Shown: in pieces, positions 5,297-64,000 of the stretch
How positions within the stretch are numbered: position 1 is the stretch's first letter
How the letters are laid out: each line of letters begins with the position of its first letter
NCBI GenBank assembly: GCA_030704615.1
Contig: CM060731.1
Coordinates: 78,554,001-78,618,000, forward strand
Direction: 5' to 3'
DNA: 64,000 bases
DNA from: Takakia lepidozioides
Lineage: Eukaryota; Plantae; Bryophyta
Notes under the pieces: model-generated
Database searches by the model: none
Told to the model about the DNA's origin: nothing
The model's input: only the letters and a program-made list of their open reading frames with translations
Made by a program: the position numbers and the translations under genes

Positions 5297-6831
5297 TTGA
5301 CTTGATGAATATGGATTGAAAATATAGTAACACAAATTAATACAACATCTTGTTAGTTTGGGTGGTATAGGGACCATAAATAAAAACTGCGTGTCAACAG
5401 AATACCATGTTTGATCTATCACTGCAAGAATATCATTCGTCCATTACTTCTCTTGAGATATGGAAGGTCGCAATGATGCAAGAGATCATATGAGCCACTA
5501 AGATGAGACATGTATAATGGATATGAGCAGTTGTATATAAGAGGAAGAAGTAGACTAGGATCTATACTCTATAGAATTAAAAACGGTGGAAGATAGAGAA
5601 GAAAAAAAATGAAGACAAACATGTAAGTTACACATCATGTACACCAATGTTGTTCTGAAGCAATAAAGTTGATTGCATAATCCCCCATCAATTGATGCAC
5701 TAGCCATAGTAGTTTTGTTACAATAATATTTGTTGCAGGATTCATATTTACACATAAACTGGGCAGTAACAAAAGATTATAATGAGAACCAACATTCAAT
5801 GTATGGGAACGGTTGAAAAGATAATAAGAAGTAAGTTTGCAAGAGGAGAGGAGGTGACACTTGAATGAAAGGTATAGAAGTTTAGCGATCCTTAATTTTT
5901 GACATTGATTTCTAGTCTTCTCTTTGAGTAAACAAAAGCCAATAAATAATATAACAAAATTGTTCTAATGCCTCTTGAAAACATATTAATTATAGCCTAA
6001 ATGTGTGTTTATTTCAGCTTGAGCAAAGTACATGAAAAAAGAGAAGAAAAAAACAAGGAATAAATAATCCTCATTCTCATATCCCATTGTGTCGAAACAT
6101 TATATCGCCAAAATGTTGCTTACAACTATGAATCATATATCCACTGGTAAACTCTGTGAATTCAAGAATTTGCACTTGGTCCACACTACGACTTCAACAT
6201 GCTGAATTTTCTAGAATACCGGCCGATGAAAATATGCTAAGATCTAAGATAAATGTATATGGAATATGATACCAATGTAAGAGTATCAACTTATAAGAGT
6301 TCGTTATCCCTCACCTCTATCAAACGTACATCCCAATTTAAACATGATATTTTTGTAAGAGTATCGACACAAAATCCTTTTATATAGTAATCTGATTTAA
6401 TATCATGATCCGTTCGTGGGCTTACATTGGACTTAAAAATGACTGTGGCTCTTCTACAACTCTTTCCAAATTTGTAAGAAATTATTATCAAACGCCACAA
6501 CCATTTTCTACTTGTGGATTGCGAATGCTCCCAAACGCTAGAAATTAATATTGGCCAAAGCGCTTTTCTACTTCCAGTTCATAATCTTGTATTTAAGACC
6601 CCAGGTCCCCATGACTAATCATGTTTTCAATCACTCCCACTTCACATTCCCAACCCCGCCCCCCTTCATATTTATGTAGACTACCGAATGTATACGTTTC
6701 AGAAATTCAATGCTTCAATACATCAAACAAGTCAAAGATACTCAACTAGCTTTTTAAAAAAACAAAAAAATACTTGTCCATTTTGTGGTATTATATGTCA
6801 AAAATACTGATAGTCTGGTGAAAATATATGG
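5297..6831. repeat. Inner left arm of a long inverted repeat (partner 7939-9476)
   Basis: Near-identical reverse complement; identical mirrored ORFs 6291..6500(-)/8273..8482(+) and near-identical 5555..5755(-)/9021..9218(+). Confidence 0.95.
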
Positions 6832-7229
6832 TTGAAAATATAGTAACATCCATCAAATGTTCATATAATTAAGCCGATTACCACACATTCATTAACATAT
6901 GTATATATATATATATGGCTTTGAAGACATCATACTTCAATGATTAACTATAATTTTAATGCAACATCACCATGTCTGGTGGTAAGACACTCGAGTAGAA
7001 GAGAAGAGAGAAGAAGAAGACTCCGGTCGAAGCCGACGTAATTAAGAGCCACTTTGTTTTGCAGCTATTGCCCCTTACAGAGGTGGGCCCTATGTAAAAA
7101 TTGAGGCCCATGGGATACCCTGGGGCAGATTGGGAGAACGGTAGTAGTGGTGAAGGGTGCCGCTTGGCACTCGTGGGCCCATGGGTACCAGTGGTACCCA
7201 GAGGCGTATGAGGTGCCTAGGAAGCGGGA

Positions 7230-7938
7230 GGGAGACTGGATTCGAGTTTGTCGTTTGTTGGTGATGATTGCAATGAGGGATCGGAGCGCGCGGTGAGGTG
7301 TATTGCTTTGAAACAATTGTGAATAGATGTGATAGGGATTTAAAAATTATTTTGAAGGGTAGAGATGCTGGCATTATGGATGCCTCATCTGGTGCCAGTA
7401 GTTACGACAGTGAGTGGGCCGGTGCCCCACCCTCGTCGGCGGATGCCAACGATTAATGGTGCGTACTTTTTACGTTTTTCTAGAATAGAGGCGCTAGGGA
7501 AGCAGTCGTGGCAGTATATGAATTTTATAAAATGTATGGTGATGCCTGATGATGGTGAATGAGGGGGGGGGAGTTAAGGGGGAGGCCCTAGACTATGAGG
7601 ATGTCCGGGCATAGTTTAGCGGGGCATGTGCAGGACCCGCAAGGTTGACAGATACGTGGAAGGAGCCAAGTACATACTATATGGTCTGGAGGCCGACCCT
7701 GGTAGGTGCCGGCGTTGATGAGTGTAAACCATCTGGTTGCACTACATTGTAAGAGAAGTTTGTGGATGTGCCATACGGCGTGATTATGACGAGCGATTCG
7801 CAACCCTGTGGATGACAGGGTGTGGACATTCGCTGAGAATACGAGGCCAAGTATCACGTTTGGCATGAAGGTGTGAGCAGAGTGGGCAGTGTGGGGATGG
7901 GAATAGGGTTGGCCAGAAGGTGTGTTTGCGTTGATGGC
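7230..7938 (-). mobile_element. Decayed 3' fragment of a non-LTR retrotransposon with a CCHC finger and restriction-like endonuclease (RLE)
   Basis: Translation across stops and frameshifts: CPLC-x12-(H>R)ILSEC...LRIARHNHAV...PDILIV...IHFIKFIYCHD...EKRKKYAPL...GW..PLTVVTTG. This is the CCHC-RHN-PD-(D/E)-K..KY order of RLE-clade elements. Confidence 0.75.
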
Positions 7939-10087
7939 CCATATATTTTCACCAGACTATCAGTATTTTTGACATATAATACCACAAAATGGACAAGTGT
8001 TTTTTTTTTGTTTTTTTTAAAAGCTAATTGAGTATCTTTGACTTGTTTGATGTATTGAAGCATTGAATTTCTGAAACGTATACATTCGGCAGTCTACATA
8101 AATATGAAGGGAGGCGGGGTTGGGAATGTGAAGTGGGAGTGATTGAAAACATGATTAGTCATGGGGACCTGGGGTCTTAAATACAAGATTATGAACTGGA
8201 AGTAGAAAAGCGCTTTGGCCAATATTAATTTCTAGCGTTTGGGAGCATTCGCAATCCACAAGTAGAAAATGGTTGTGGCGTTTGATAATAATTTCTTACA
8301 AATTTGGAAAGAGTTGTAGAAGAGCCACAGTCATTTTTAAGTCCAATGTAAGCCCACGAACGGATCATGATATTAAATCAGATTACTATATAAAAGGGTT
8401 TTGTGTCGATACTCTTACAAAAATATCATGTTTAAATTGGGATGTACGTTTGATAGAGGTGAGGGATAACGAACTCTTATAAGTTGATACTCTTACATTG
8501 GTATCATATTCCATATACATTTATCTTAGATCTTAGCATATTTTCATCGGCCGGTATCCTAGAAAATTCAGCATGTTGAAGTCGTAGTGTGGACCAAGTG
8601 CAAATTCTTGAATTCACAGAGTTTACCAGTGGATATATGATTCATAGTTGTAAGCAACATTTTGGCGATATAATGTTTTGACACAATGGGATATGAGAAT
8701 GAGGATTATTTATTCCTTGTTTTTTTCTTCTCTTTTTTCATGTACTTTGCTCAAGCTGAAATAAACACACATTTAGGCTCTAATTAATATGTTTTCAAGA
8801 GGCATTAGAACAATTTTGTTATATTATTTATTGGCTTTTGTTTACTCAAAGAGAAGACTAGAAATCAATGTCAAAAATTAAGGATCGCTAAACTCCTATT
8901 ATGCCTTTCATTCAAGTGTCACCTCCTCTCCTCTTGCAAATTTACTTCTTATTATCTTTTCAACCGTTCCCATACATTGAATGTTGGTTCTCATTATAAT
9001 CTTTTGTTACTGCCCAGTTTATGTGTAAATATGAATCCTGCAACAAATATTATTGTAACAAAACTACTATGGCTAGTGCATCAATTGATGGGGGATTATG
9101 CAATCAACTTTATTGCTTCAGAACAACATTGGTGTACATGATGTGTAACTTACATGTTTGTCTTCATTTTTCTTCTCTATCTTCCACCGTTTTTAATTCT
9201 ATAGAGTATAGATCCTAGTCTACTTCTTCATCTTATATACAACTGCTCATATCCATTATACATGTCTCATCTTAGTGGCTCATAGGATCTCTTGCATCAT
9301 TGCGACCTTCCATATCTCAAGAGAAGTAATGGACGAATGATATTCTTGCAGTGATAGATCAAACATGGTATTCTGTTGACACGCAGTTTTTATTTATGGT
9401 CCCTATACCACCCAAACTAACAAGATGTTGTATTAATTTGTGTTACTATATTTTCAATCCATATTCATCAAGTCAACCCTAAACTAGAACACTATAGATT
9501 ATACATCCACATATTAGATCTAGTTGTTCTTTAAATATCATCAAATTATTACGGTATAGTCCAACACTCTTAAAGACAAGGTCTCATCATATTTGAATTA
9601 TGCAAATGACCCTAAATTCTCTACGTATATATATATATTTATTTATTTATCAGAAATTAGGTTGTGCCAATCTGAACTAAGTTGTGCCAACAACCTGGCG
9701 GCGCCTCCCTTAGTGGTGCCACCAACCTTGTTGGCGCCCCCTGCCTTAGTGGCGCCACCTACGTTGTTGACGCCCATGTTGTCAACAAGTGGTGTGAACA
9801 ACTAAGTTGATTTGTCGAGGGCCGTGGTCATACGGTATTCCTTCGTGTACCAAATGCCCGACAAATCAAAGATGAAAGCATCTAAGCATGAATTTGAAGG
9901 ATCTAAGAATTTATTAGAGAATATTTGTTGAACAAGCGGGATGAAGACATGGGCATTTGGTATTCCAACGCATACCGTTTGCCCACAAAATCAACCCTGG
10001 ACAAATCATCTACAACCACTAGTGGTTGATTTGTCGAGGGTTGTAGATGATAGTGAAATTGTCGAGCATTTGATATTCCGTAGGGCT
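7939..10087. repeat. Right arm of the long inverted repeat (7939-9476 pairs with 5297-6831; 9480-10087 pairs with 2589-3204)
   Basis: Direct reverse-complement comparison. Confidence 0.9.
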
Positions 10088-12103: not shown

Positions 12104-12892
12104 GTTGTCGTGCGCATACATATCGCTACACAACTACATCGCTGTCCAAAACCACACATCACATGTGTATACCAAACACTAGTCTATAACTAATCCACCA
12201 CTAGTGCACCGCTAGTCCTGCCACTAGTGCAACCACTAGTCCAACACTAGTGCAGCCACTAGTCCAACACTAGGCTGCCACTAGCCACCACTAGTGCAGC
12301 TACTAGTCCACCACTAGGCTGCCACTAGCCCATCACAATGATAAAGAATGAGATTGATACAAACACACAAGCTCTCTCAAACTCACATACTTGCACATGA
12401 AAACATCACTCATATATTAAGTCCAGCCAAGTGCACCCACGCCATGGGGGATCCACACTACGGCGCCATAGCTAGACGCGGTGAGGCTCAACTCGAGAAA
12501 GATGAGCCCACCGCGATCTGCCGTGAAGATAACAACGTCAGGTGCCCAAACATGTATTGGCCCCTGGATTGACACTTGGATCAATCCCAAATGTCAATAT
12601 ATGAAAGCTAGCTATTTCCTAGCTAACTTCACACTAGTGGTAAAATATCTTGACAGCTATCGTGCGCATACATATCGGTACACAACTACATCGCTGTCCA
12701 AAACCACACAACACATGTGCACACCAAACAATAGTCTATAACTAGTCCACCACTAGTGCACCGCTAGTCTTGCCACTAGTGCAACCACTAGTCCACCACT
12801 AGTGCACCGCTAGTCTTGCCACTAGTGCAACCACTAGTCCACCACTAGTGCAGCCACTAGTCCATCACTAGGCTGCCACTAGCCCATCATAG
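12104..12892. repeat. ~235-bp direct repeats (12104-12338 and 12656-12892) rich in CCACTAGT units, abutting both sides of an LTR
   Basis: Both copies begin g(t/c)t(g/a)tcgtgcgcatacatatcg and end gccactagcccatca. Confidence 0.85.
12339..12655 (-). repeat. Downstream (3') LTR of copy A
   Basis: TGTCAAG...CTTTATCA; similar to 23770-24087. No TSD with the 5' LTR and no adjacent PPT. Confidence 0.8.
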
Positions 12893-13142
12893 CTGGCGCT
12901 TAGGTCCCTCTAAGTCCAGGTAGCCACAAGATGTGATAGTGGCCATAGCCTCACTAAGTCCTCCACCACTGTCCGTACTACACTCAAACTCAATAGATCA
13001 ATAGGCCGGGTACAAGAGACTTTGCCCCATCGTTAGTCGCTGTCTTGCAACGTGTGAACTTGAGCCTGAGATCTTGGGTATTGACTCCTATGAGCTTGGC
13101 CTCCCATGTCTTGTGAGCTGCCACTAATCATATCCACTGCCA

Positions 13143-13290
13143 CTATCCCAAGCAATGTGGACATAACCAATCTCCAACAGAAACCATCTCAAGAGGTGGT
13201 GTCAAGCATCCCATGTGCCAACCTCTTGAGCATCGATCACACACCAGCATAGTGGCGGCGCCACGAGCATGCCCACATAGCATGCAACGC
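13143..13290 (-). pseudogene. PHD finger (C4HC3) at the integrase C-terminus
   Basis: CMLC...MLVCDRCSRGWHMGCLTPPLEMVSVGDWLCPHC in ORF 13143..13523. Confidence 0.9.
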
Positions 13291-14505
13291 AATCCTGCAG
13301 GTACCACTACAAGGTTGGGATCTATCCTCCCATCCACATGTGGAAGGTGACATGGCGCACAATTACGCACATGGTTCTTCCATACCATGCCATCTCGACC
13401 CTCCAGAATTAACAGTCCTGAAGGCAACACCTCCCTGACCCTTAGAATCACACGTCCTGCTGTGACATCCAAGGTCGTAGGCGCTGTCTGCTGCAGATAC
13501 ACATTACTGCAGCCTACCTGCAAATAGACGCAGGCAAATCTGGCTCTCGGCCAAAGAGAAGGAAATATGGTGAGAAGGAGGCAAGTGATGCTTGCTTGCT
13601 AAACCTGTAGCCCATGGCTAGCCAAGGTACTTGAAGATCCCAATCTCCTAGGTGTCCCTTTTGCAAGCCATACTTGCGCAAACCCCTCTTTACCGTCTGC
13701 ACCACTCTCTCTGCCAAGCCATCGACCTCAGGATGATCCCGAGAAGTGCTACGGTGGTCTATCAAGGCTTTATCACACAAAGCCTGAAACTCCCCCAAGA
13801 ACTCTCTCCCTTGGTCCGTGAGTACCTCAGCTGGAGCACCGAATCGGCTAAGCACACGATCCAGGAATGCATACGCAGCCCCCTCACTAGCCTTGTCAGG
13901 CAATGGAACCAACTCAATCCACTTGGAGAAGTGCTCCACCATCACCAACACATATCTGTGGTGGCGCATCGTCAGTGGCAACGGCCCTGCGAAGTCAAGA
14001 CTCCACCTGTAGCCCAATCCTATGATGGGTAATGGATGCAACTGTGGTGTAGGGGCGTTGAATGAAGCACGCACCCTGTCACACACCATGCACCTAACCA
14101 CGAACTGTTGCATCTTTGTGTGCATACCACGCCACCAATACTGCCCATGCAGTAAACTATGAGTGCGTCGCACTCCAAAATGCCCCAACTCCTCATGGGC
14201 ATGCCGCACTAACTGTGCACACTGTGTTGGGTGAGGCACGATCCTCACCCGACCATCCTCCCACACTCGAAATAGGTGTATCCCCTCCCACTGAATCTCT
14301 TGGCTCATTGCAGGATCTGATCCCTCTCCTTGGCAGTCACACTAGCTGTCGTGTCTCCAGTGCGGAGGTAGTCCAACACAACCGAATCCTCATGTATATC
14401 TCTGGCACCATCTGGCTCATCACTAGCCTCAGGGTCCTCAGACACTCTGTCTACAGTCATCCCTGTTGTAGGTCCAACCTGACCTCCCGATGCCAAGATA
14501 CACAA
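13291..14505 (-). pseudogene. Retrotransposon integrase (HHCC zinc finger plus DDE core), disrupted
   Basis: HEELGH...CMVC; WSLDFAG...TDQG...LAERVV in ORF 13514..14308; frame breaks near 14305 and 13515. Confidence 0.93.
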
Positions 14506-14589
14506 AAAGGCAGATGCATGTCATCCCGACACCATCTCCTCGTCCGTCTCACCATGCCACCGAGCTCCAGTGTCATCTACTGGCTTGTG

Positions 14590-14712
14590 CATGGATTGCG
14601 ACTCAATCCATCCGCATCCCTATTGACCAAACCCGGTCGATGCACAACCTGAACATGTCTTTCATGCTCCTCCACCGTAGCACGAGAGGCAAAGCAATTC
14701 CTGTAAGCCTCA
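14590..14712 (-). pseudogene. Fused remnants of pre-RT linker, RT and RNase H
   Basis: One frame reads EAYRNCFA-SRATVEEHERHVQVV-HRPGLVNRDADGLSRNP: a pre-RT motif, the helix that follows YxDD in RT, and the RNase H C-terminal ADxLSR motif. Confidence 0.75.
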
Positions 14713-15109
14713 GGAACCGCCGTATACGTCGTCTCTCTCCTCTAGTGACAATGGATCCAATGTCAGGCTCCCAATTGCCCTTCGTAACTACAACCTTAAG
14801 TCCAGCAGACTTAGAAGTAGAGGACGCGTCCCGTGGTTGCTATGCCGCAACCTCTTGAGCAGTACTCCCTGCCTACTCAGTCAATGACAAGGCCTCATCC
14901 TGCCCCATCATCTCATCCTTGAGGACCTCCTCAACCCGAGAAGAATCCCAAACCTCATCCATCACAGCCGCCTTGGCTGCCAACTCCCTCTGAACCTCGA
15001 GCACCTCCCACGTGTGCCATGGATGTCTACACCCCGTGGTCTTCACCGGCTCGCCCCCACTCACTACCTGTACCATCTCGGTAGGCAGAGAGACCGTCAA
15101 GGGAAGTGC

Positions 15110-16160
15110 ACTCCTCACTCTACGTTGCTCAGCCATAGCCAAGCTGATAATCCAGGTCAAGCAATTTAGATCCATCGCTTGCCCCAATACCTGACGACAT
15201 GATGCCTCAGAAAGAGGAGGCACCGCCGTGGTCCCAGTGGAAAAACCCATAGCCCACTCTCGCTCGTCGGCATTAGGCTCCACTAACTGCTGCTACTGAG
15301 CATCCCACAGGAGGCCGGGTCCACTATCCCGGAAAGCATGCGATCTTGGGAAGCTGAGCAGTGTACGGTACTGTTGTTCGTGGTCGACCCACCTTGTTAA
15401 CCACTGCCAAAGGCGGACGATCATCGTGTCTCACACGCTGAGACTGCCTCCCTGTGTCCAAGATGCTATCAACTGTGAGGTGTGCTGGTCGCTGCACCCC
15501 ATCAAATGCACGCTTAAGCAGTGCGGGTGATTTAGTCCACCATAGCCGTGGACGATGAGCCCGTGACCCCACTGCAGCTGCATCCAGCAACACTGCTGAC
15601 CCAAGCCACGACCGGACTTGATGCACACTGGCCATCACCCTGGCCCGAGAATCGCCCATCAGTGGCACATTCTCCAAGATGTATGCTGGAGATACAACCT
15701 GATAAAGCTGTGAGTGGCTTAAAACTTGCACCATCTCCCAAAACAGACCCGACCTCGAGTCTCGCAATCCATTGCCATGCCTAGCTGATGAGTGCCCTTG
15801 GCAGGGCCAACCTGCCACTACCAAATCAATGGAGCCAACCCGCTCCAAATCCTGCGCCCCCAGCAAAGAAATGTCTACTGACAAGGCCTGCTGATATCCA
15901 CGAACCGCATACACCGGCAACAACTCAGGGTACTGCTGCATCAACAGAGCAACATGACGGAGTGAGACGCGTCGTGCGGTCTCATCCCTCTCCACATACA
16001 AGTAACGCCGTACTCGTACACTTGCCTGTAGAACAGCAGCCAACCCAGTGTTGATCCCGCCAAACAAGTCCAGAAGGCAAATGCCTTCATCCAGACACTG
16101 CCACACGATTAGTGTGGTGTCCAATGATGACAACTGAGGTGGTCCTGGTGCAATCCCCGC
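15110..16160 (-). pseudogene. C5-cytosine DNA methyltransferase domain within the retrotransposon pol (copy A)
   Basis: Motif I LDLFGGI, II YVE, IV DLVVAGWPCQG, V GLRDSRSGLF, VI ILENV, VIII AHRPRLWW (ORF 15324..16217); motif IX EREWAMGF and X LGQAMD (ORF 14873..15283). One frame break. Confidence 0.93.
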
Positions 16161-16374
16161 ACTCTCCTCTCTCCTGACGATACAAAAGCCTCTACCCAGG
16201 CTTGTTGCACACGACAATCAGCAACCCGCTGCAAATCCTTGCTCGAGCCCCACAATGGAGTGTGAGCAACCATGGCAGGCAACTCCGCCATACCATACAT
16301 GTCATCCTGCTCTCCTAGAGGTGACACATCCTCTAAATGAGTGTTGCCATTCAACAACTCTCCAGGCCAACTCA

Positions 16375-19300
16375 CACTACAACAGATGAGCGTTTTTATG
16401 ACTGCACATATGACTATTTTTTCAGTCCTATATGCGTTCATGACTACATCACTCTATAGTGAAAAAAACCCTGTCATAGCGACTAGTCTTTAGGACTGCA
16501 TTTTGCAAGTCATAGCCGTGACTGCGTGCGTGGCACCTGGAGTCATGCATAAGAGAGTGATGTAGTTACAACTCTATAACTTACATACGACTAACTATAT
16601 GACTACATTGTCTGGTGAGCGTTGCCTACATGGAGAGGCTTTAGAGGAACACGTGTACCACTGCGCAAGTGACACGTCACGACACCTGTTGCACTTCAGA
16701 TGTGACATGTGGCACTTAGACATAATATATGACTAGCATATATGGCAGGGTTTATGCCACGTGTCATCAAGAATGTCTCTGAAAATAATTTAATAGTTAT
16801 ATTTGTAATTTTAAATTCTTAAATTTATATTTTATTTTTGAAAACAGGGAATAGCAGCTTGGAATTTTTTTATTAAATGGTATTATTGTTTAATTTAATA
16901 ATGTTATATAAAATAAAAATAGATTAAATGATTTAAATTCTTCATTATATGGTGAAATTCTGATATAAAAACAGAATGGACCCCTCTTGCATACTAGCAA
17001 CCACAAGGACATTCAAAATAGACAAGTACAGGGAAATACACGCCCTGTAAATTATATTACAAAAATCCAAATGAGACCAATGTCCCAATGGACACCTCAA
17101 AGGCCACAAGGTCCAAAAATCCATGCCTGAAAAGGTCCAGTAAGTAAAAAATAAGCAACCCCACACATGGGCTGAATTGTTGTAATACTAGTTTGTTCTG
17201 GTGCTACTAGAATCAAGGACCCTATTAAACAGTGCAATACTTACGGCCGATTTGATAAGAGGGAAAAACAAGGTGAAATGTGTTAAAGAAGGTGCCTTGA
17301 TTAACAGTGCCTGATTTGATCAATTGTGCCGCTGCTGCTGCGGCTTCCAGTTGACCATCTACCCATGCAGGTTTCTTGTACCTATCCTTCCACAGGGAAT
17401 CATAGGTAATATGGAGCTTGAAATCCGACCATCTTGGATGAATGTGGACCCACACATCTATCCCTGCTCCTTCAACTATCCATGCCCCTGCACAAATCAT
17501 GCATACATCCTCGCCTTGCTGCTAGCAGCTGACAATGACAGCCAAGTTCTATGACCCAAACCGAGAGTGAGCACAATGGCTTTGTAAGGCCAATGCCTAC
17601 AGGGCATATTCAATACTACAATGAGGATACGCAAGCAGCAGATACCATGTGTAAATAAAAAAACAACAAAGGTGGTGAAGGTGCGCAACCTGCCAAAGAG
17701 AGGGCGGAGTTGAGGAAGGATGAAGCAACTACAGACATTGCGAAATGCTCTGATGCGGACAGAAGGGAAGACCCAGGCCTTCTGGCAAAAGAACAAGCTG
17801 CTGACAGCAACAACATGGAAGCAGAGTGGATACAAGTTGATTTTGACAAACCTGAGTCCATCAGACAAGGCATTAGAAGGCCCAAACAAAGAACACTGTC
17901 TAAAATCTGTAATAACATGAGACACAGTCGTCACACACTAACCCAACATGGGTCTTGGCAAACTTTCAGCAAAGCTGAAACAATCACAGAAGCAAAAAAA
18001 GGGGCAGGACCTCAAGGGAAGATGTATGGAGTACCTTTTGCAGTGATCAATGAGTACGTGGAAGGAGGAGAAGCTTACCCATTGCCAAGCACGGAGTACA
18101 TGATGCAACCAACAGCACAAGTATCATGTCAGTTCACTCATAATGAGCTGGAGGCACTGGATGAGTTGGACGAGATATACCATATAAGTGATCACACTCC
18201 AATAAGACTACAACAACACCCCACATCAACATGTTGACACGGGGAAGTGCAAAGAAGGCCAAAATAGGGGATGGGATGCCTATTCTGCAGAAATCCAGCC
18301 AAGACATCAAGGATTTAGGGCAAAAACATGGATTTGGTGAAGAAGAATGCATTGGCATGGACAACATCTACAGCTCAGCAGGGTTTGAGCGCCAACCAGA
18401 GATATTCATGGGAGAGGGTGACAAAAGCGAGGAAGAAGCCAAAACACAAAGCCTTGACACATTCACTGAAGACTGGGCAGACAAACAGATAAGAGAAGAC
18501 AACTCGCAAGAAACGGATAAGAGGGGAAAACAGGGTGAAATGTGCTGAAGGAGGTGCCTTCAGTAGAAGTGCCTGACCTTATCAATTGTGCCGCTACTGC
18601 TGCCGCTTCCAGTTGACCATCTACCCATGTAGGTTTCTTGTAGCTATCCTTCCACAGTGAATCACAGGTAATGTGGAGCTTGAAATCCAGCCCTCTTGGA
18701 TGAATCTGGACCCACACTCTATCCCTGCTCCTTCAGCTATCCATGCCTCTGACAGCCTAGAATTCTACCAGCAAACACCCCAACCATACTGGTGTGGAGT
18801 TCTTCCCCAAAACACCCCAACCCTACTTATCACAATCTGAAATGCATCTGCTTCTCTCTGTAGTCCAATAGTCATTCGCCTTTTTGTCTCCATTGTCCCA
18901 CCATTGACTGGGGTCGGAAAGTGTTCACCCCAAAGCTTCTCCTCACCTCTATTATATGTTTTTGGATACTTCCATGCTGCCACACTGGTAGTAACTTGCC
19001 AAAGTCACTCCAAACCACCACAGATCTACCCAACGACCTAACTTACAGAATTCAATATGCATCTTGCGGACGAGTATGATGAGAGGGCAACACAGGCTGA
19101 AATAGGTTGAAGAAGAAGGTACCCTACCACATTGTCCTTGACCTGTCCTGACCCATGGAGGATTTGACCGACCATCAACCTAAAATGACCTCTTGTGTGT
19201 GCTGCTTGTGTCTGTAGTCAGGTAATGTCGGATCGGTCTGTGAGATCGAACCACTACGGCCTAGCTGAGTAGTCAGAGATTGAAACACGCATGCTAAGAC

Positions 19301-19903
19301 CAAGCTGACTTTCCCAAGAACGGCGAGCTCGCTTCTCCTCGTCTCGTCTCCTCCTCCTCTTCTCCTTCGTGCATCATTTGCTCAACGCCTCCATCCCACG
19401 CCCCTGCATATCCTGCTATCATCGCGTTCCATCCCTCGGCTATGTGGTGTGGCGCAGGAGACAAAAAAACGCCAAGTCCCAGCCCTCATTTCTGTTCACG
19501 ATTACCCTAATGGGCAACCTTATTAACAATTTTTTAACTTTTTTAAACCTAATGGGCAACCTTATTTGCATTATATGTGCCTTCAAAATGACACGTGTAG
19601 TGATGTAGTCGTATAAATAGAGCTGTGAAACCATCTTCAGTCATGGAGTCATAAGATTCCATGAAACGTCGTCCACGTGTAGTCAAACATATCACACTAG
19701 TCATATAAACCATCCCTGTCATCATGGTCAACAATGTTTGACCAATGCTCCCTAACTTTCCGGAGTCATGTAGTGATATCCATTACTACAAAGTCATAAA
19801 ACTATGATTGCAATGCATTTCAGCGCTCTGTAGTCATCTACCTAGTGCAGTTTTTATGACTCCGCCAAAGCCGTAGTCCTAAAAACGCTCATCTCTTGTA
19901 GTG
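16375..19903. mobile_element. CACTA (En/Spm) DNA transposon, non-autonomous, inserted in copy A
   Basis: 29-bp TIRs CACTACAA(C/G)AGATGAGCGTTTTTA(T/G)GACT; 3-bp TSD TCA; subterminal TATGACT/AGTCAT motifs. Removing it restores ...DAVSWPG, matching AAVSWPG in copy B. Confidence 0.95.
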
Positions 19904-20960
19904 TCACTGCATCTATGAATGCTGCCAGTATCGGCATCTTGCCTCGCTGGGCAACCGCAACTCCTCCTATGAACGTCACAGGGAGCTGCACACGCCGGCC
20001 CTCCCCTGACTGCCATCCAGGCCTATAGGAAGCCGACTCCTCCCAAAAATCCAGGGTGAAGCCCATGGGGTACAACATTGCCCCACCAACAATAACATCG
20101 TACGAGACCGCATCTATCACAATGGCCTTGGCTCTTATCACTGAGCCATCTGTAGGATGATCCGGCTGTAGTCCGATAGCCAACTCACGCCGTGTAATGC
20201 CTCAAGCCTGCTCTGATCCTCCCAGAGATGTCTGTATCTGGAAAGGACACGGCTCCATATCCGCCTCCATGAGGCCCAAGCCTGCAATAGCAGCTCTGCC
20301 CAGCATCAATGGCTGAGCTCCCGAGTCCAACGAGACCCGTAGTGGCCAGTACCTCTTGCCTGCCGGTCCACTCAAATATAAAATGTCATCCTGGTTATCT
20401 AACATGACAACTCCAGGTGTCACCATGGCGCGCTTAATGGCTGGCCTAGCTGGCAGCTCCATCAACCTAGTAGCTATAGCTTGTCATGGCGCCGCCGTGG
20501 TAGTCTTGACCCTCACATCCGAGGATCCCTCCGGCACTACACCTCCCACTATCTCCGCAGAAGATGAAGTAACCTCCCCACTCTCACAGAGTGTGGCTGC
20601 CAGCCTGAATACCTCAGCTGGTCTTACCCCCGGCGTCGCAATCATGGTAGCCGAGAACAATGGAGCCTGGCACACAGCTGTGGCCGCCCCCAACAGCACA
20701 CTAGCTGTCGTAGCTTTGGCAACACTAGGTAGTGGTGTTGCCCGTGTAGCTCTCCCCAATGGCATAGTAACCTCCGCCTCGGTAACAGTCGAGCGAGAAC
20801 TAGGTGCCATGGATGGCGTCGACATTGTCTCCGCCAATGTGAATGACTGAGGAAGCCTGGCCTGACGGCTTGCCTCCCCACGCTATGGATCCAACTCCAC
20901 CTCCGCACCCCGTGGCTCAAGAACTCGTGCTGCTCTTCGAGTCACTGCCGCAGCTGACTC
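19904..20960 (-). pseudogene. Gag-pol linker and aspartic protease (copy A)
   Basis: VSLDSGAQ active site and YDVIVG in ORFs 20202..20465 and 19854..20183; colinear with ORF 62143..63417. Confidence 0.9.
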
Positions 20961-21119
20961 CACTTGCACTAGTGGTAGTGCTGCCCGGCACTAGTGGTAA
21001 TGGTGCCCCACCCATAGTGGTAGTGGTAGTGGTGCCCCACCCATAGTGGTAGTGGTAGTGGTACCCCTCACTAGTGGTAGTGGTGCCCCACCCATAGTGG
21101 TAGTGGTAGTGGCACCCCT

Positions 21120-22685
21120 CACTAGTGGTAGTGCTGCCCCGCACATGAATCCCATGCCTCCCATATCTCCTCCCTCAGGAGCAGGAGGTGGACCATCCGG
21201 CCTTGGAGCCGGTACCACTTGAGCTGTGGCCATGGCAGCGAGCCTCTACTCTAGCTGCTGAAGCCGATTGGCCATGCCTTGGTCACCACCCTGACCTCCG
21301 CGTCCTTGGCCATGTTGAGCTTGCCCTTGGCCTGCACGTCGTGCCTGGCCACCTCGTCCTCTCTAGGCTACTCCACCTCGCCCCCGGCCACCATTGTTCC
21401 CTTGGAACTGGCCTGGGTGCAACTCAGGATGCAAACCATAGCACTGGGCCTCTCCATGCCCGTACTTGCCACAATGCCTAAACTGTGCAGGTTGTGCCGG
21501 TGCCAAACCATTGCCTCCCTCTGGGCAATCCTTCTTGATATGAGGTCCTCCACATGTCCAGCATACCACATCCGCCCATTGTTGGCTTACAAATGAAGGG
21601 AGCGACCCCTGCATCTGAGGTCCTCTCTGTCCTTCCCTAGGCTTCACCTGAGCCCCCTTGTTGCCTTGAGTACGTTGAGGTAGTGGCTGGCTAGGAGCAC
21701 CACTATCCCGTGGTGCCTCCTTAGCAAATCCCACCATGACCACTCGTTCCTCCACCATGTTGAGCTCTATCCGCTCTGCCAGCAAAAACACATTTGCTAA
21801 GGTGGGTTGGGCCGCTTGTAGGAGAGTTGCATCCTGCACCCTTCTCCTCAGCTCCTTGTCCAATATCCTATACCAGAACTGGACTGCCTGAGCTTCTGTA
21901 ACTCCTTGGGTTACATTTATCAAGCGCCTCATGCAAGTGAAAGCCTCCCTCATGCTCTCAGTAGGCTTCCTCTGGAACTCTTGCAAGCTCCTCAACTTCT
22001 CTGTCCTCAACCCTTGGTAGTTCATTCTCAACTCTTCGAAGAACTCCACAACAGGGTTGAAGGCAGGCACCGCCACTGGTGCTGGTGCAGCAGTAGCTTG
22101 GGTGGACGTCGTAGCCTCTGTACCACTAGTCCCACTACTGCTCGTGGAAGCTGCTGTTGTAGCTGCTGCTGCTGGTGCAGCTGCCGGTGTGGCTGCTGCC
22201 CTTATTCCTCTAGTGCCTCTAGTGATGGAGACATAATCGGGTGACCAGTACATCCTCCACTCCTTGATCTCAATATTATGCCCCTGCCTAAACTCATGGC
22301 AATCATCCATGGGCGGTCCCTCAAGGTGCTGAAACAACCCCTTCCATGCCATAAAAGGCGTAAACAATTGTGGATTGCGCATTTGCTGCAAGTCACACCA
22401 ACTATCAAACTCTTGAATGAAATCATCCAACTCAATGGTGCCCACCGCCCCAGAGTACATACGTGGCCCCTTGGTGGCTCCATACATCTCCTCGATTGTG
22501 TCCCACAACAATGGCAAGGAAACAACTTGCACCGCCGGTGTGAGTCCTCTTGATTCACAATCCGAATCAGAACCTTCCGTAGAAGACACAGGAGGTGAAG
22601 GTGGCCTAAACCGCACACCTCGTCTTGTATACCTGCTAGTATCGCTAGTGCTCGTACCGACACTTTCCCCAGCAACTAGTGGCAC
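21120..22685 (-). pseudogene. Gag with two zinc knuckles and an RGG-rich tail (copy A)
   Basis: ORF 21363..22685: capsid-like region, CWTCGGPHIKKDC and (C>F)RHCGKYGHGEAQC. The premature TAG corresponds to CAG in copy B. Confidence 0.88.
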
Positions 22686-23757
22686 CTCCGTGTTGACAAA
22701 CTGACACTCAACTAGTCATGAACATGTTTCTAACCCCCTCTCCACAAGGTAACTGGGTAGAGAACCTGATGCGACTTATGGTTGGAATACTAGGTTCATA
22801 ACATAGCCTGCACCTGCACCTGCATTCACCGCAGACACTCCTATGGTTGGCTGGTCATCACCTCCAACCTCACCACAGGAGAAACAAAGATGGTCTGACT
22901 AGTCATCAACCCAGCCTCACCATCGACAGCATACTCTAGGGTTGGATCGGCGATCAAGCCCGAGTCAACTACCTATAAAATCAAGCGCCCACACAAAACT
23001 AGCATGGCGCACAATCAAGCATGCAGGTGTGGAGGGGATCCAAACACAAATCTGAAAATACGCACCTTTACAAACTTGGTGCACTTGCACTTCTCATGCA
23101 TCTCCCTTGGCTCTAGGGCGCCTCGTTGCTGCCCTTCTAGCCCCGCTCTTGCCACTCCAAGAGCCCTTACACTGCTGAGTTTCAGATTGAAACTCCAACT
23201 CAGCACATGCTTCACAAGTGCACTGATTTGCACACAAGAGGGACCAGCCCCCTCTCTTCACATATACCTCTTCATGAGCTTGGAGCTGAAGCTCCCAACG
23301 GACTGCGATGCATCCCCTCGCAGCTCCACCATTCGGCTGCTCCTCATCTACCCGCAACAACTAGTTTTGGGCAGAAATACCTGGAGCTGATCATATCATC
23401 TCCAACCTACAACATGCTAGCTTCCCATGCGCAGCCCACATTCCTTCAGCTCCTTAACTCGGCCTGCAACTGAAGAAGACGACCACCAGTTTGCCCACTC
23501 GTGGCCAACATCTCCTCCGCTTCACACTAGAAGCCCAAACTTGGTTGCCATAGCGTTGAGCTATGCAACGCCGCTCTTCAACAGAGGCTACCCGTCTCTC
23601 TATCCATGGCAAACCTGCAACCTGTTCGCCTTTGCACTCTATCCGCTTTGGATAGGCTCATGCACGGCTCCCTGCACTCTAGGTTGAACCGCTTCTCATG
23701 ATCTAAAAACACAAGTGCTACAACTAACTCGAACCTGGCACTCACAGACTCGAGCTG

Positions 23758-23769
23758 ATCTTTCTCGAG
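23758..23769 (-). promoter_or_regulatory. Putative self-priming primer-binding site of copy A (CTCGAGAAAGAT)
   Basis: Directly abuts the 5' LTR, lacks TGG, and is complementary to LTR positions 23924-23935. Confidence 0.75.
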
Positions 23770-24087
23770 TGATAAAGAAAGAGAATGATACAAACACACA
23801 AGCTCTCTCAAACTCACATACTTGCACATGAAAACATCACTCATATATTAAGTCGAGCCAAATGCACCCCACGCCATGAGGAATCCACACCACGGCGCCA
23901 TAGCTAGACGCGGTGAGGCTCAACTCGAGAAAGATGAGCCCACCGCGATCTGCCGTGAAGATAACAACGCCAGGTACCCAAACATGTATTGGCCCCTGGA
24001 TTGACACTTGGGTCAATCCCAAATGTCAATATATGAAAGCTAGTTATTTCCTAGCTAACTTCACACTAGTGGTAAAATAACTTGACA
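23770..24087 (-). repeat. 5' LTR of copy A
   Basis: TGTCAAG...CTTTATCA, followed by the PBS-position sequence and a leader to gag. Confidence 0.92.
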
Positions 24088-52317: not shown

Positions 52318-53530
52318 GATTTTTTAAAGTCATTTTTTGAATTCTGCTCTAATATTATTTTTCTCGTTTCTTTTGTTTCTTCACAAACATTCATTATGAT
52401 AAAATCACCAAACCAAAATCAATCGTTTACCCAGTTTTTAAACCCTCAAAAGTTCAACCCTCTGATTTTATGGTGAGCACGTTTCAAAGTACTAATATAC
52501 CATCTATGATAGTACATATCAGTGCGTTTTTTTTTCCTTCATTTTTCCAGAATTACAGGCCAATTCACCATTAATTGATTGAATATGTTTTTATTTTAGG
52601 ATTCATTATATTTTAATTTAAACTTCATAAGTGTAGTTTTTTCTAATTTAAAATTTAGTCTAGGGCAGTGTGCCCGGTTTTTTGGTCCCCTGGATTAGCC
52701 CGCACAGTGGCTGTTTGGTTCATAGAAACAATCTTTGCTCTTTTTGCATTTAATGTAGAATCAGATAGAAGTTATTTTCGTATCTTGGACTTTATCTCTG
52801 TTCGGAGAGGCTGGCTCGAACTACACTGATCACAGTGGGTATACCTCATGGTGTAACGGGGTTTTAATTTTTTTCCCCATCAAATAATTTATAATAAATA
52901 TATCAGGGATATAACCCCCCTGTTCCCTTAAATATAAATATAAATATAAATATATATATATATATAGAAACATTGAACTACATAAGAAAGAAGGGAAAAA
53001 AATTCTTGTTGAAGTAGCTACAATAAGTAGCTATATTATTTAGTTACTATATTTCAATAATATGTTTTTAAATATTGTACTTTTAAACATTGTTATCATA
53101 ACTTGTCACTAGTACTGCAGATTAACGAGCAACCTTAGTTCTAGTGACGACTAGGTCGGAAACTAGTTTTAGTAGAGAGGTGTCATAGTGCCACATCACG
53201 GTTGCCACATCATCATCAGCCATGTCATCACTCCCGGATTGCCTGAAACATTAACAAAAATATCATCTCTGCCACATCATCGTCGCCACGTTTTGGAGGC
53301 CAATTCATCACTCTACATTGTTGCTGCCCAGATTGCTTGAGAAAAAAAATAAAAATAAAAATAGAATCTGCTCTACTATTTAATCTGCTCTGTCAAATCT
53401 GCTCTACTATTTAATTTATTTTTATTTTCATCGTTTCTACACATATTCAATGTAAATGTTAGAGCACGTCCAAAATATTACTTTGATTTTGTGATAAGCA
53501 TGTTTCAATTTACCAATATCTTACGATAGT
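51345..53530. repeat. Three related ~400-450 bp repeat units with (CA)n(CT)n (about 51812-51873) and poly(A) (52275-52315)
   Basis: ggtact.tagtgcca..tcatca and tttatggtgag...tttactaa motifs recur near 51430, 52120 and 53180; gtcggaaactagttttagta occurs at ~51400 and ~53155. Confidence 0.6.
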
Positions 53531-53704: not shown

Positions 53705-56452
53705 TTGAAGTTGATGCACGTATCTGAGATGCAAAAATTGGCTCCTGCACAAACTCAAACTGAAAAGCGATCTCGGGAGTTGGCTGTGAGTGAGCCATGG
53801 AATGAGGCTGAATCTGAGGCTGATTCCCATGAGGCCAAGATGAAACGAAGCAAGGACGTCACTAGGGAAATCGGAAGATTGGTGAAATTGCCAGAATTTT
53901 ATGGTAAGCCATCTGTCAAGCCCGAGGAAATATTGTCTTTCCTGGATACATTAGAAGAGTTCTTTGAGGACGATTATTCAGAGTAAGCCAAGATACAGAC
54001 AGCTGCTCTGCAGCTCCGTGATGCCGCCAAGCTATGGTGGTCGCGCCAAAAATAGGAACGCCATGAATACAAGAAACCACCTGTGGATAGTTAGGCTATG
54101 TTTAAGACATTGTTCTTAGCCCACTACCTACCTAGCGACTATGCACACAAGATGAAAGTAGAACTGTTCGGGTTGAAACTGGAGACCTTGAGTGGTGGTG
54201 AATTCAAAACTAGATTTGAGACCCACGCAAGCTACTTTTCTTCCTGAGTGAAGAAGACGGGGTTGATTTCTTTGTGGATGGCCTGAATGATTCCCTTAAA
54301 TATAAAGTCAAGGCCCACAATCCTCGAACAAAAGCAGAGGCCTATCGCTTGGCTTGTAACTTTGAAAGTGAGATCAGGGCACAGAGGATTGTAACTCAGG
54401 CTCGTGAATTTAAGCCAGTTGCAGTGCCATCTTGGCAACCAACTAAGAAAAAGGGGAACTAGAAAAGGTTCAAGCCCTATAACAAAAGGCAAGATGGCTC
54501 GAATAGTCGAAGGCCATCGCAGGTAGAAGCCCCTGCACAGCTCAGTGCCAAGGAACATGAAGAACATAGGTGCAAAGGATTGTGTTTTATCTGCCATGAG
54601 TGGGGTCACAGGGTTAGAGAATGTCCTAAGTGTCAGGCTCGGCAGGCAGCCACAGTGGTAGTTCAGAAACCAGCCGAACCTTTGACCATAGCAGAAGTGA
54701 CTGATGAAGGGCCAAGTCAGGAAAAAAGAAAAGGAACTCATATTCGGGTTTCAACAGCAGTTGTTGAGGATCAGGTGGCCTACAATCCTAATGTCTTTCG
54801 GGTTTATGGCAAGGTAGCTGGATCTGCCACCCAGGTGTTGATAGACACTGGAAGCACTCACAATATGTTGTCCAAGAACTTTGCTGACAACCTGAACCTG
54901 GCTCAAGAAAATGTGCAGCCTTCCCACATTCTGCTACCCAACGGCGGTGTGGAGTTTACACACAGACATTTGTCAGAGGTGCTAATGATCCTGCAAGGTG
55001 TACACACGACAGCAGATTTCGAGGTCTGGGATGGAGCTCGGTACGACTGCATCCTCGGTATTCAATGGCTGGATCCAGTGGATGCGGTGGTAGTCTATAA
55101 GCTCGGAACGGTCAGTGGGACTTTGCCAACTGGAGAGGCATTCAATCTTAAAGGTACTAGGGCCCTTCCTAATGTCCCAATCTTGTCAGCCTTGCAGATC
55201 AAGAGGTACATTCGTAAAGGGGACACGCAACTTTTTGTTGTTAGCGTGCATGAACCATCAGGAATAGAGTGTGTGAAAAATTCGTATCCTAGACCTGATA
55301 TACTGCTGCATGAATATGTTGATGGGTTTCTTGATGAACTTCCTGGAATGCCCCCTGAGCGAGAGATTGATCATGCTATTGAACTAGTGACGGATGCTGT
55401 ACCAGTTGCAAAGGCGCCATACAGACATTCAATCGCAGAGAATGAGGAATAAGAAAGACAATTGAATGATTTGCTTGAGAAAGAGTACATTCTCCCAAAT
55501 AAGTCACCCTGGGGCGCTCCAGTGATGTTCAAGAAAAAGAAAGATGGAAGTCTGAGGTTGTGTGTTGATTATAGGTGGTTGAACAAGTTCACCATCAAGA
55601 ATAAGTTTCATCTGCCTCGTGTAGACGACCTGTTTGACCATCTGTATGGGAGTCAAGTTTTTTCAAAGCTTGATCTCCGATCTGGATATCACCAGATACG
55701 AATCAATGATTCTGACATACTGAAGACCGGATTTCGATCCCGCTTTGGTCATTACGAATTCTTGGTGATGCCATTTGGGCTCACGAATGCTCCAACAACA
55801 TTCACGCATCTACTGAATTCCCTGTTTCAAAAGTATTTTGGAAAGATGGTCTTGATCTACATGGATGACATACTGATATACTCGAAGATCAAAGAAGAGC
55901 ACGAACTGCAGTTACGTGTGGTCTTAGACATACTGAGAAAGAACCATCTGTTTGCTAAGAAAAGCAAGTGTGAGTTCTTTGTGGACCACATGGATTACTT
56001 GGGATTTCTCCAAAGATGGAATCTCGATTGATCCCAAGAAAGTCCAGACAGTGGCTGAGTGGTCTAAGCCAAGTGATAAGACAGAGGTCGGAAGCTTTAT
56101 TGGATTTGCCAGCTTCCTACGGAAGTTTGTCAAGTCTTTTTCACAGATTGCAGCTCTGTTGACTGACTTACTTAAGGACTCAAGTCCTGTAAGCTTGAGA
56201 GATGTCTGGATAGGAGAATGTGATAACAATTTTGAAAAATTGAAATTGCTTTGACGCACACTACTGTACTGAAAATTGCTTGATCCTACTAAGGGAGCAA
56301 TTGTATTCTGTAATGATGCAAGTGATCTTGCTGTCGGGGCTGTGTTGATGCAAGATGGATATGTGATTGCATATGAATCTCGAAAGGTCAGTCCAGCAGA
56401 GAAGAATTACCTGACTCATGACTGTTTGCAATAGTTCATGCCTTAAAGATAT
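53705..56452 (+). mobile_element. Decayed Ty3/gypsy gag-pol (gag, CCHC knuckle, PR, RT, RNase H), interrupted by copy B
   Basis: [57 protein letters not shown]. The reading AIVHALKI stops exactly at the LTR of copy B. Confidence 0.92.
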
Positions 56453-56806
56453 TGTCAAGTTAAATAAGCACAGTGTGAAACTAACTAGAATAAAGCTAGT
56501 TATTTGTATTTAACACTTGGATTTAGATCAAGTGTTAAATCAGGTGTCAAGTTTAGTTTGACACCTGAATTGTCTTATCTTCACGAGAGCGTCAGTCGCG
56601 CAGCTCATCTCTCTCGAGTTGAGCCTGCGCGACCGAGCTCCTTCATCGTTTAGAACTGAGTGTACTTATGATGGGAGGATAGGTTGTTGTGGGGTGGAGT
56701 CCCCATAGCTTGGGGTGCCCCTGGCTCGACTATTATCTGAAAGAGTGATGATGAGATGGATTTCATGTTTCTTGTGTTAAGAGTGTGTTCTTAGCTTTTC
56801 TTATCA
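56453..56806 (+). repeat. 5' LTR of copy B (diverged from A and C)
   Basis: Same termini, shared TTATCTTCACG and CTCATCT.TCTCGAGTTGAGCC motifs; followed by CTCGAGAGAGATGA. Confidence 0.85.
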
Positions 56807-56820
56807 CTCGAGAGAGATGA
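56807..56820 (+). promoter_or_regulatory. Putative self-priming PBS of copy B
   Basis: 56806-56820 is the perfect reverse complement of LTR positions 56605-56619. Confidence 0.75.
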
Positions 56821-62142: not shown

Positions 62143-63417
62143 GTGGAGTCTGCTGCAGCCGTGACTCGAGGAGCAGCACGAGTTCCTGAGCCACGAGGTG
62201 CAGAGGTGGAATTGGATCCACAGCGTGGGGAGGCAAGCCGTCAGGCGAGGCTTCCTCAGTCATTCACATTGGCGGAGACAGTGTCGACGCCATCCATGGC
62301 ACCTAGTTCTCGCCCGACTATTACCGAGGCGGAGGTTACTATGCCATTGGGGAGAGCTACACGTGCAGCACTGACACCTGCTACCAAGGCTAGTGCAGCC
62401 GGTGTGTTATTGGGGGCAGCCACCTCTGTGTGTCAAGCCCCACTGTTCTCGGCAACCATGATTGCGACGCCGGGGGTAAGACCAGCTGCAGTGTTCAGAC
62501 TAGCAGCAACACTCTGTGAGAGTGGGGAGGTCACTTCATCTTCTGCGGAGTTAGTGGAAGGTGTAGTGGCAGAGGGATCCTCGGATTTGAGGGTCAAGAC
62601 TGCCACGGCTGCGCCATGGCAAGCTGCAGCTGCCAGGTTGACGGAGCTGCCAGCTAGGCCAGCCTTTGAGCGCGCCATGGTGACACCTGGAGTTGTCTTG
62701 TTAGACAACCAGGATGACATTTTCTCTTTGAGTGGACCGGCAGGCAAGAAGTACCGGCCACTGCGGGTCTTGTTGGACTCGGGAGCTCAGCCACTGATGT
62801 TGGGCAGAGCTGCTATTGCAGGTTTGGGCCTCATGGAGGCGGATATGGAGCCTTGTCCTTTCCAGATACAGACATCTCTGGGAGGATCAGAGCAGGCTCG
62901 GGGCATGACACGGCGTGAGTTGGCCATTAGACTGCAGCCGGATCATCCTATAGATGGCTCAGTGATGCGAGCCAAGGCCATTGTGACAGACGCGGTCTCT
63001 TACGATGTCCTCGTTGGTGGGGCAGTGTTATATCCCATGGGCTTCACCCTGGACTTTTGGGAGGAGTCAGCATCCTACAGGCCTGGATGGCAGTCAGGGG
63101 ATGGTCGTCGTGCACAGCTCCCTGTGACATTCATTGGGGGTATTGCGGCTGCCCAGCGGGGCAAGATGCCAACACTAGCCGCCTTTACAGCTGCAGTTAG
63201 TTGGCCTGGAGAGTTGCTGGAAGGCAATGCCCATGCAGAGGATGTGCCACCTCCAGCAGAGCAGGATGACATGCATGGTACGGCGGAGTTGCCTGCCATG
63301 GTTGCTCACACTCCATTGTGGGGTACGAGCAAGGATTTGCAGCAGGCTGCTGATGGACGGGTGCAACAAGCCTGGGTAGAGGCCTTCGTACCGTCAGAGA
63401 AGAGGAGAGTGCGGTGA
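62143..63417 (+). CDS. Gag-pol linker plus aspartic protease (copy B)
   Basis: 424-aa open segment with VLLDSGAQ and YDVLVG. Confidence 0.88.
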   Translation: MESAAAVTRGAARVPEPRGAEVELDPQRGEASRQARLPQSFTLAETVSTPSMAPSSRPTITEAEVTMPLGRATRAALTPATKASAAGVLLGAATSVCQAPLFSATMIATPGVRPAAVFRLAATLCESGEVTSSSAELVEGVVAEGSSDLRVKTATAAPWQAAAARLTELPARPAFERAMVTPGVVLLDNQDDIFSLSGPAGKKYRPLRVLLDSGAQPLMLGRAAIAGLGLMEADMEPCPFQIQTSLGGSEQARGMTRRELAIRLQPDHPIDGSVMRAKAIVTDAVSYDVLVGGAVLYPMGFTLDFWEESASYRPGWQSGDGRRAQLPVTFIGGIAAAQRGKMPTLAAFTAAVSWPGELLEGNAHAEDVPPPAEQDDMHGTAELPAMVAHTPLWGTSKDLQQAADGRVQQAWVEAFVPSEKRRVR

Positions 63418-64000
63418 TTGCACCAGGACCACCTCAGTTGTCGCCATTGGACACCACACCTCTTGTGTGGCAGTGCCCGGATGAAGGCATATGCCTTCTG
63501 GACTTGTTTGGCGGGATCAGCACTGGATTGGCTGCAGTACTGCAGGCAGGTGTACGAGTTCGACGTTACCTGTATGTGGAGAGGATGAGACTGCACGACG
63601 CGTCTCACTGCGCCAGTTGCTCAGTTGGTACAGCAGTACCCTGATTTGTTGCCAGTGTCTGCAGTTCGTGGATACCAACAAGCCTTGCCAGCAGACATTT
63701 CGTTGCTGGGGGCGCAGGATTTGGAGCAGGTTGGCTCCATTGATCTGGTAGTGGCAGGTTGGCCCTGCCAAGGGCATTCATCAGCCGGGCATGGCAATGG
63801 ATTGCGAGACTCGAGGACGGGTCTGTTTTGGGAGATGGTGCGGATTTTGCGCCACTTGCAGCTTCATCAAGCTGTATCTCCAGCATACATCTTGGAGAAT
63901 GTGCCACTGATGGGTGATTCTCGGGCCAGGGTGATGGCCAGTGTGCATCAAGTCCGGTCGTGGCTTGGGTCAGCAGTGTTGCTGGATGCAGCTGCAGTGG
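63414..64000 (+). pseudogene. C5 DNA methyltransferase domain (copy B), truncated by the window end
   Basis: LDLFGGIS, YVE, DLVVAGWPCQGHS, GLRDSRTGLF and YILENV; small indels near 63585-63625. Confidence 0.92.

Follow-up and report, generated by a model that had tools for sequence, protein, structure and literature searches.

Three copies (A, B, and C) of one retrotransposon family lie in the window, our term for the whole 64-kb stretch of Takakia lepidozioides DNA that was analysed, and they raise the question of how the synthesis of their minus-strand DNA is primed. Copy A occupies 24087 to 12106 on the minus strand. Copy B, on the plus strand, has its 5' repeat at 56453-56806 and a body that continues beyond the window end, and copy C is on the minus strand, with its 5' repeat at 2116-1790 and a body that continues beyond the window start. 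An alignment of four repeats (A5 and A3 of copy A, C5, and B5) sets the repeat limits at TGTCAAG...TTATCA, and in copy A the similarity between the 5' repeat (23770-24087) and the 3' repeat (12339-12655) ends exactly before CTCGAG. The repeat of each copy ends in ...TCA and, as an earlier sequence-only reading of this DNA had stated, is followed by CTCGAGA(A/G)AGAT rather than by TGG. That reading called the repeats LTRs. Repeats do exist, but the portion it described, with its U3, R, and U5, is only the 'A' part of a split repeat whose layout is described below.

In each of the three copies, the 12-15 nt that follow the 5' repeat are reverse-complementary to a site that lies inside this repeat, about 150 nt from its start. 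In copy B, a 15-nt site at 56605-56619 (conserved core 56608-56619), which would supply the first bases of the RNA, pairs with a primer-binding site (PBS) at 56806-56820; position 56806 is the final base of the repeat, and the PBS proper begins at 56807. The corresponding partners on the minus strand are 23923-23935 with 23758-23770 in copy A (13 nt) and 1954-1968 with 1776-1790 in copy C (15 nt). These pairs had been reported before, and all of their coordinates proved exact on re-check, as did a joint change in copy B, where one site base and the matching PBS base differ from those of copies A and C. The 3' repeat of copy A holds a second copy of the site (12491-12503) with no PBS behind it. 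The 12-mer pattern occurs nine times in the window against an expected 0.36, and seven of the nine occurrences are the sites and PBSs of the repeats.

One possible extra copy, at 52638-52830 on the minus strand, was rejected. It has a 12-mer before TCGAGCC, a one-mismatch complement 181 nt downstream, and GGTATAC upstream, but it is AT-rich, has no repeat partners, and is probably due to chance; it could also be a very old relic. A comparison with Rfam gave nothing beyond a sub-threshold chance match.

A gag search located relatives in bryophytes only, namely in Calypogeia fissa, Marchantia polymorpha, and three Sphagnum species. Eight relative loci from Calypogeia, Marchantia, and Sphagnum were joined with the three window copies into an 11-copy set that covers four genera. 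In all eight relative loci the sequence that follows the 5' repeat is complementary to an internal site of that repeat, and this site always directly precedes a conserved T(T/C)GAGCC. The complementarity after the 5' repeat extends over 12-17 nt in 10 of the 11 copies and over 10 nt in the remaining, decayed copy. Directly behind the repeat the sequence reads CTCGAGA..., CTTAGAG..., CTCAAAG..., and so on, and never forms a tRNA-type TGG PBS. Six sequence variants of the site and its PBS are found in the 11 copies, two in the window and four further ones in the relatives. Calypogeia and the window's genome each contain two of these variants.

All 12 core pairs are standard in every one of the 11 copies (alignment A2), and changes on both sides are seen at 8 of the 12 core pairs and at 11 of the 15 pairs counted. 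None of 500 shuffles reached the observed values for site-PBS pairing, and moving the partner by 1-3 columns reduced the pairing to about 40%. Covariation over more copies had been proposed as a check on the single compensatory change in copy B, and the covariation found across the 11 copies is far stronger than that change. The complementarity, its position, its covariation, and the conserved structure described below are directly established properties of these copies. Such covariation is what self-priming would be expected to leave. In the standard retroviral scheme the primer is copied into plus-strand strong-stop DNA, which would give the progeny a PBS derived from the primer sequence. 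A single change in the site could therefore be carried over to the PBS within two rounds; for a contact between RNA segments that is purely structural, two mutations would have to arise independently.

We conclude that the copies are bryophyte elements of the Ty3/gypsy type that probably prime their minus-strand DNA with their own RNA, in the classical manner of Tf1. This conclusion is also supported by the start of the PBS exactly at the end of the similarity between the 5' and 3' repeats, and by the lack of TGG. In the proposed mechanism, transcription would begin at the site, about 30 nt downstream of a motif at the TATA-box position, and the first 11-15 RNA bases would fold back onto the PBS directly after the repeat. 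RNase H would then cut the RNA just past the paired stretch, and the freed 3'-OH would be extended through U5 and R. A second helix (helix 2, formed by UGAGCC with GGCUYGACU in U5) and a conserved hairpin may serve to bring the primer and the PBS together. The start site, the cleavage, the priming, and a mask discussed below are the parts of this scheme that we infer.

A conserved motif about 30 nt upstream of the site had been noticed earlier, and TTATCTTCACG is indeed identical in A5, A3, C5, and B5. It begins 30 nt upstream of the 15-nt site (56575-56585 in copy B, 23954-23964 in copy A, and 1984-1994 in copy C) and lies at the position of the TATA box of the relatives, where its counterparts in the alignment are GTATAAAG in Sphagnum and GGTATA in the liverworts. 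In each of the 11 copies a distance of 28-32 nt separates the start of the motif at this position from the first base of the site; the motif reads TATAAA in Sphagnum, GGTATA in liverworts, and TTATCTT in the window's genome. This spacing leads to the prediction that transcription starts at the site, whose first base also forms a pyrimidine-purine step, and the site would then constitute the first bases of the element RNA, as in Tf1. The TTATCTT of the window's family is a poor TATA box. Two small contig sets of uncertain type on copy A extend over U3 and end about 60-100 nt beyond the site, although contigs cannot show starts or strands. An ENA contig (L011) considered as a transcript was rejected, as it is a low-coverage metagenome contig that begins inside the leader.

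The sequence-only reading had proposed Tf1-like self-priming, possibly with the site presented in a loop. Its first part is upheld by the covariation across species, and its second part finds no support in the RNA folds or in the motif spacing. If the site were presented in a loop, the RNA would start upstream of the left arm of a GC-rich hairpin, the 12-nt loop of this hairpin would pair with the PBS, and the RNA would then be cut. The arms flank the site at 56595-56607 (left, on the U3 side) and 56620-56633 (right) in copy B and at 23935-23947 and 23909-23922 in copy A. The stem is formed in RNA and DNA folds that contain U3, and the UGAGCC with which the right arm begins also serves as the 5' strand in helix 2. 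In copies A, C, and B the two arms are complementary, with entirely different outer sequences. This covariation, which had been claimed before and is real, is seen between copies A and B, where the outer 7-9 bp differ wholly and complementarity is kept. It means that the hairpin must form in some strand, and it counts against the explanation that we prefer. Presentation in a loop is also favored by the GC hairpin being the minimum-energy fold once U3 bases are included, and by a TATATT in copy A that lies about 95 nt further upstream than the motif at the TATA-box position.

However, a closed 12-nt loop on a 13-bp stem cannot form a duplex of 12-15 bp, and it is a duplex of this length whose every position is maintained. 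In Calypogeia, Marchantia, and Sphagnum, moreover, the site is not a loop at all and forms the strand of a stem opposite an arm identical to the PBS. RNA folds were begun 3 nt before the core site, and a second series was given 30 more upstream bases. For RNA begun at the site, each of the 11 copies has 8-12 of the 12 site-PBS pairs in its minimum-energy fold. With the 30 extra bases, which bring in the arm, the site-PBS duplex is gone in 7 of the 11: every window copy and four of the eight relatives. The spacing of the motif at the TATA-box position likewise indicates a start at the site. We therefore consider presentation in a loop unlikely, and the classical form of self-priming, with the primer at the free 5' end of the RNA, remains our preferred reading.

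For an RNA that starts at the site, the upstream arm would lie in U3, outside the RNA 5' end. In all eight copies from outside the window, the site is directly preceded by 10-12 nt with the same sequence as the PBS, and this arm and the site form a perfect hairpin with compensatory changes. In the window's genome, the PBS-identical arm is replaced by the GC stem that flanks the site. An arm in U3 would be carried only by plus-strand strong-stop DNA, by read-through RNA, and by the 3' copy of the repeat within the RNA, and in the first of these an unmasked site would compete with the new PBS end. Our tentative proposal is that the U3 arm masks the site, so that the primer would be free only on correctly started RNA. 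When the window repeat is folded as DNA, the clamp forms and the PBS end is left unpaired with the site. The Sphagnum repeat as single-stranded DNA still prefers the site-PBS pairing, and on energy alone a mask has no support there.

In its strongest form, this proposal would make the U3 arm a built-in anti-primer that hides the self-primer in every strand that carries U3, so that only RNA begun exactly at the site primes. We regard this form as possible but doubtful. If it is true, the PBS end of strong-stop DNA would stay free for the second strand transfer, and the family would have reinvented, in two forms, a solution to a problem peculiar to self-primed elements. A U3-side arm that, by these folds, could hide the site is in any case new, and it raises the question of how self-primed elements keep the second copy of the primer sequence from interfering.

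The stretch from the site to the PBS also carries a structure of its own. A consensus fold of this stretch, computed with RNAalifold from the 11 copies (alignment A3), unites helix 1 (the site with the PBS), helix 2, and a covarying hairpin in one structure. Helix 2 joins (AG)UUGAGCC with an invariant GGCUYGACU about 110 nt downstream; in copy B, these strands are AGUUGAGCC at 56617-56625 and GGCUCGACU at 56723-56731. The hairpin sits just before the second strand of helix 2, at 56691-56721 in copy B, with six pairs changed on both sides and 98% paired. Helix 2 is 99% paired in the 11 copies and almost invariant, the changes in Marchantia being from U-G to C-G. It fits the structure, and because of its near-invariance covariation gives no proof of it. 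Taken together, helix 2 and the hairpin comprise 20 pairs with 98.6% pairing, a value that none of 500 shuffles equaled. This conserved, covarying R-U5 structure is new. Helix 2 and the hairpin resemble the supporting structure that Tf1 needs, its U5-IR, and we offer this likeness as an analogy and not as homology.

Further evidence on the position of the PBS comes from the layout of the repeats. Elements of this family do not have plain LTRs but are arranged as A1, PBS, genes, polypurine tract, B1, A2, and B2, with termini TGTC...GACA. This layout, together with a DDE integrase (rve), is found in window copy A (12106-24087, minus strand) and in five other loci: L001 (8110-18024), L002 (8509-17712), L007 (6903-19061), L008 (6640-17879), and L009 (5944-13636), the last being from Closterium. 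In copy A, the B2 segment at 12106-12338 is a repeat of the approximately 231 nt that precede A2 (B1, 12656-12889), with 91% identity over 231 nt, and B2 is the true 3' end of the element. Target duplications of 4 bp lie outside A1 and B2 in the four bryophyte loci (L001, L002, L007, and L008). At the corresponding position copy A has a match of three bases out of four, and in the Closterium locus a target duplication was looked for and none was found. Locus L008 has one extra B-A unit.

At the junction of A2 and B2 in the four bryophyte loci, the last base of A abuts the base that immediately follows the polypurine tract. Copy A and L009 lack a clean polypurine boundary. In the four loci, the junction thus brings the end of U5 to the start of U3, as in a two-LTR circle. 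The junction of B1 and A2 consists of the two termini abutted with 2 nt between them, and it forms the palindrome GACAGCTGTC in L001. Because the A2-B2 junction falls at the same last base, the repeat end is a genuine reverse-transcription boundary, and the PBS proper measures 11-12 nt. The last approximately 35 nt of B (GATGTAYGTTGTATGRCGAT...CGCACGACA; 12656-12700 in the window, 17540-17584 in L001, and 17215-17257 in L002) are kept between liverworts and mosses despite being non-coding, and they are probably the recognition sequence of the integrase for the right end.

The boundary bears on a second alternative, in which the site and the PBS would form a long-range RNA contact with another role, such as packaging, dimerisation, or translation control, and the primer would be something else. 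The conserved R-U5 structure could indeed serve packaging. Nevertheless, the pairing begins at the exact repeat end, where a primer must sit and where the same base marks the reverse-transcription boundary at the A2-B2 junction, and no other candidate PBS is present. For dimerisation, it had been suggested that the palindromic CUCGAG acts as a kissing loop. This suggestion finds no support in the relatives, because the palindrome is absent from the sites of Calypogeia and Sphagnum and Marchantia keeps only UCGA of it; a palindrome for kissing dimers is therefore not conserved. We judge a contact with another role to be quite improbable.

A host tRNA, tRNA half, or other small RNA as the primer, with the match inside the repeat being secondary, is hardly credible: half-tRNA primers do exist in plant copia lineages (PMC6317226), but the PBS lacks TGG, and each of the six PBS variants is matched by its own repeat, with two variants in the window's genome and two in Calypogeia, which rules out a conserved host tRNA or tRNA fragment as the partner. 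A search of the window and of ten loci with ARAGORN yielded no tRNA genes, and the case against a tRNA primer accordingly rests on the variability of the PBS.

The coding content places these self-priming candidates in a particular lineage. The order in copy A is gag with a zinc knuckle, aspartic protease, C5 DNA methyltransferase, the end of RNase H, DDE integrase, and PHD finger. Copy A is without RT and most of RNase H and is a non-autonomous, decayed copy. The full-length relative L001 has the intact order of gag, PR-DNMT, RT, RNase H, IN, and PHD. The C5 cytosine methyltransferase domain (PF00145) lies inside pol, between protease and RT, in L001 and in the window (15324-16217, minus strand), and the domain is also found at 63196-64000 on the plus strand. 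The integrase C-terminus has a PHD finger (about 13146-13598, minus strand) and no chromodomain. Among the best 120 RT matches, those with names are from bryophytes, Closterium, or Klebsormidium, and most of the matches are unnamed metagenome proteins. By these sequence criteria the element belongs to the streptophyte Gypsy-DNMT3 lineage and is like KnitGypsy-Dnmt3. The streptophyte RT relatives and the PHD finger in place of a chromodomain are the reasons why we do not place the family in the Tf1/sushi group. The Closterium relative (L009) has the split repeats, with TGG 8 nt after the repeat, and shows no clear self-priming signal, as its 11-nt complement is in the wrong register. The charophyte relative L010 has no usable repeats.

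To our knowledge, self-priming has been shown experimentally only for Tf1 of fission yeast and has been predicted for a limited set of other lineages. [quoted passage not shown] Tj1, Tcn1, and the sushi group are predicted self-primers, and so, among plant elements, are the TAR copia lineage and the Tcn1 clade found in mosses and club-mosses; predicted self-primers make up about 12% of the plant elements surveyed (PMC6317226). That survey scored as self-priming a complementarity to the LTR of at least 10 bp that starts 0-5 bp after the 5' LTR (PMC6317226), and complementarity of this kind is what the bryophyte family shows. Marchantia and Sphagnum were not among the species of the survey, and elements carrying DNMT were not described in it (Neumann et al. 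2019; PMC6317226).

The bryophyte family shares with Tf1/Tf2 and the Tf1/sushi group, including Tj1 and Tcn1, the lack of a tRNA PBS and the complementarity of the bases after the LTR to the presumed RNA 5' end. It further resembles this group in its PBS proper of 11-12 nt and in having extra RNA helices that join the partners (PMC7175516, PMC4600332). Unlike the Tf1/sushi elements, it has an integrase that ends in a PHD finger and not in a chromodomain, a pol that carries a DNA methyltransferase, and, among the named ones of the best 120 matches, RT relatives that are streptophyte and not fungal or vertebrate. Its repeats are also permuted (A...B-A-B), with a U3 arm that may hide the site. 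Cleavage and priming, in contrast to Tf1, are here predicted from sequence. The Tcn1 clade of chromoviruses, which also occurs in bryophytes, and TAR of Ty1/copia resemble the family in their complementarity under the same computational criterion (PMC6317226).

KnitGypsy-Dnmt3 of Klebsormidium nitens has a DIRS-like A-coding-B-A-B repeat layout, given in a figure legend, and its primer sites are not discussed in the paper that describes it (de Mendoza et al. 2018; PMC5890265). The bryophyte family has the same layout and shares with KnitGypsy-Dnmt3 a methyltransferase of the Dnmt3 type within its Gypsy pol, and its relatives include an RT from K. nitens; it differs in that its copies are bryophyte and carry a PHD finger after the integrase. 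A literature search on self-priming and bryophytes found nothing further. Most likely, then, a known mechanism operates in a family where self-priming had not been described.

The family offers a clean comparative set, with six covarying pairs of primer and PBS, a conserved R-U5 fold, and a boundary that is independently confirmed by the A-B junction. It is also old, being found in liverworts and mosses, and it brings its own DNA methyltransferase and permuted repeats. The analysis yields a precise and testable prediction of the transcription start and the cleavage point, for which Marchantia polymorpha, with its related copies, would be a tractable test host.

Some other features of the window were observed in passing. 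Copy A has a 3.5-kb insertion relative to copy B (16375-19906), which holds internal direct repeats of 200 nt at 17254-17455 and 18516-18717. Copy B is nested in the RNase H region of a different Ty3/gypsy element (54580-56450), whose protease lies at 54580-55452 and RT at 55462-56031. Large near-perfect inverted repeats at 5297-10051 are unrelated to the retrotransposon family; for example, 5874-6770 and 8003-8899 are 99% complementary.
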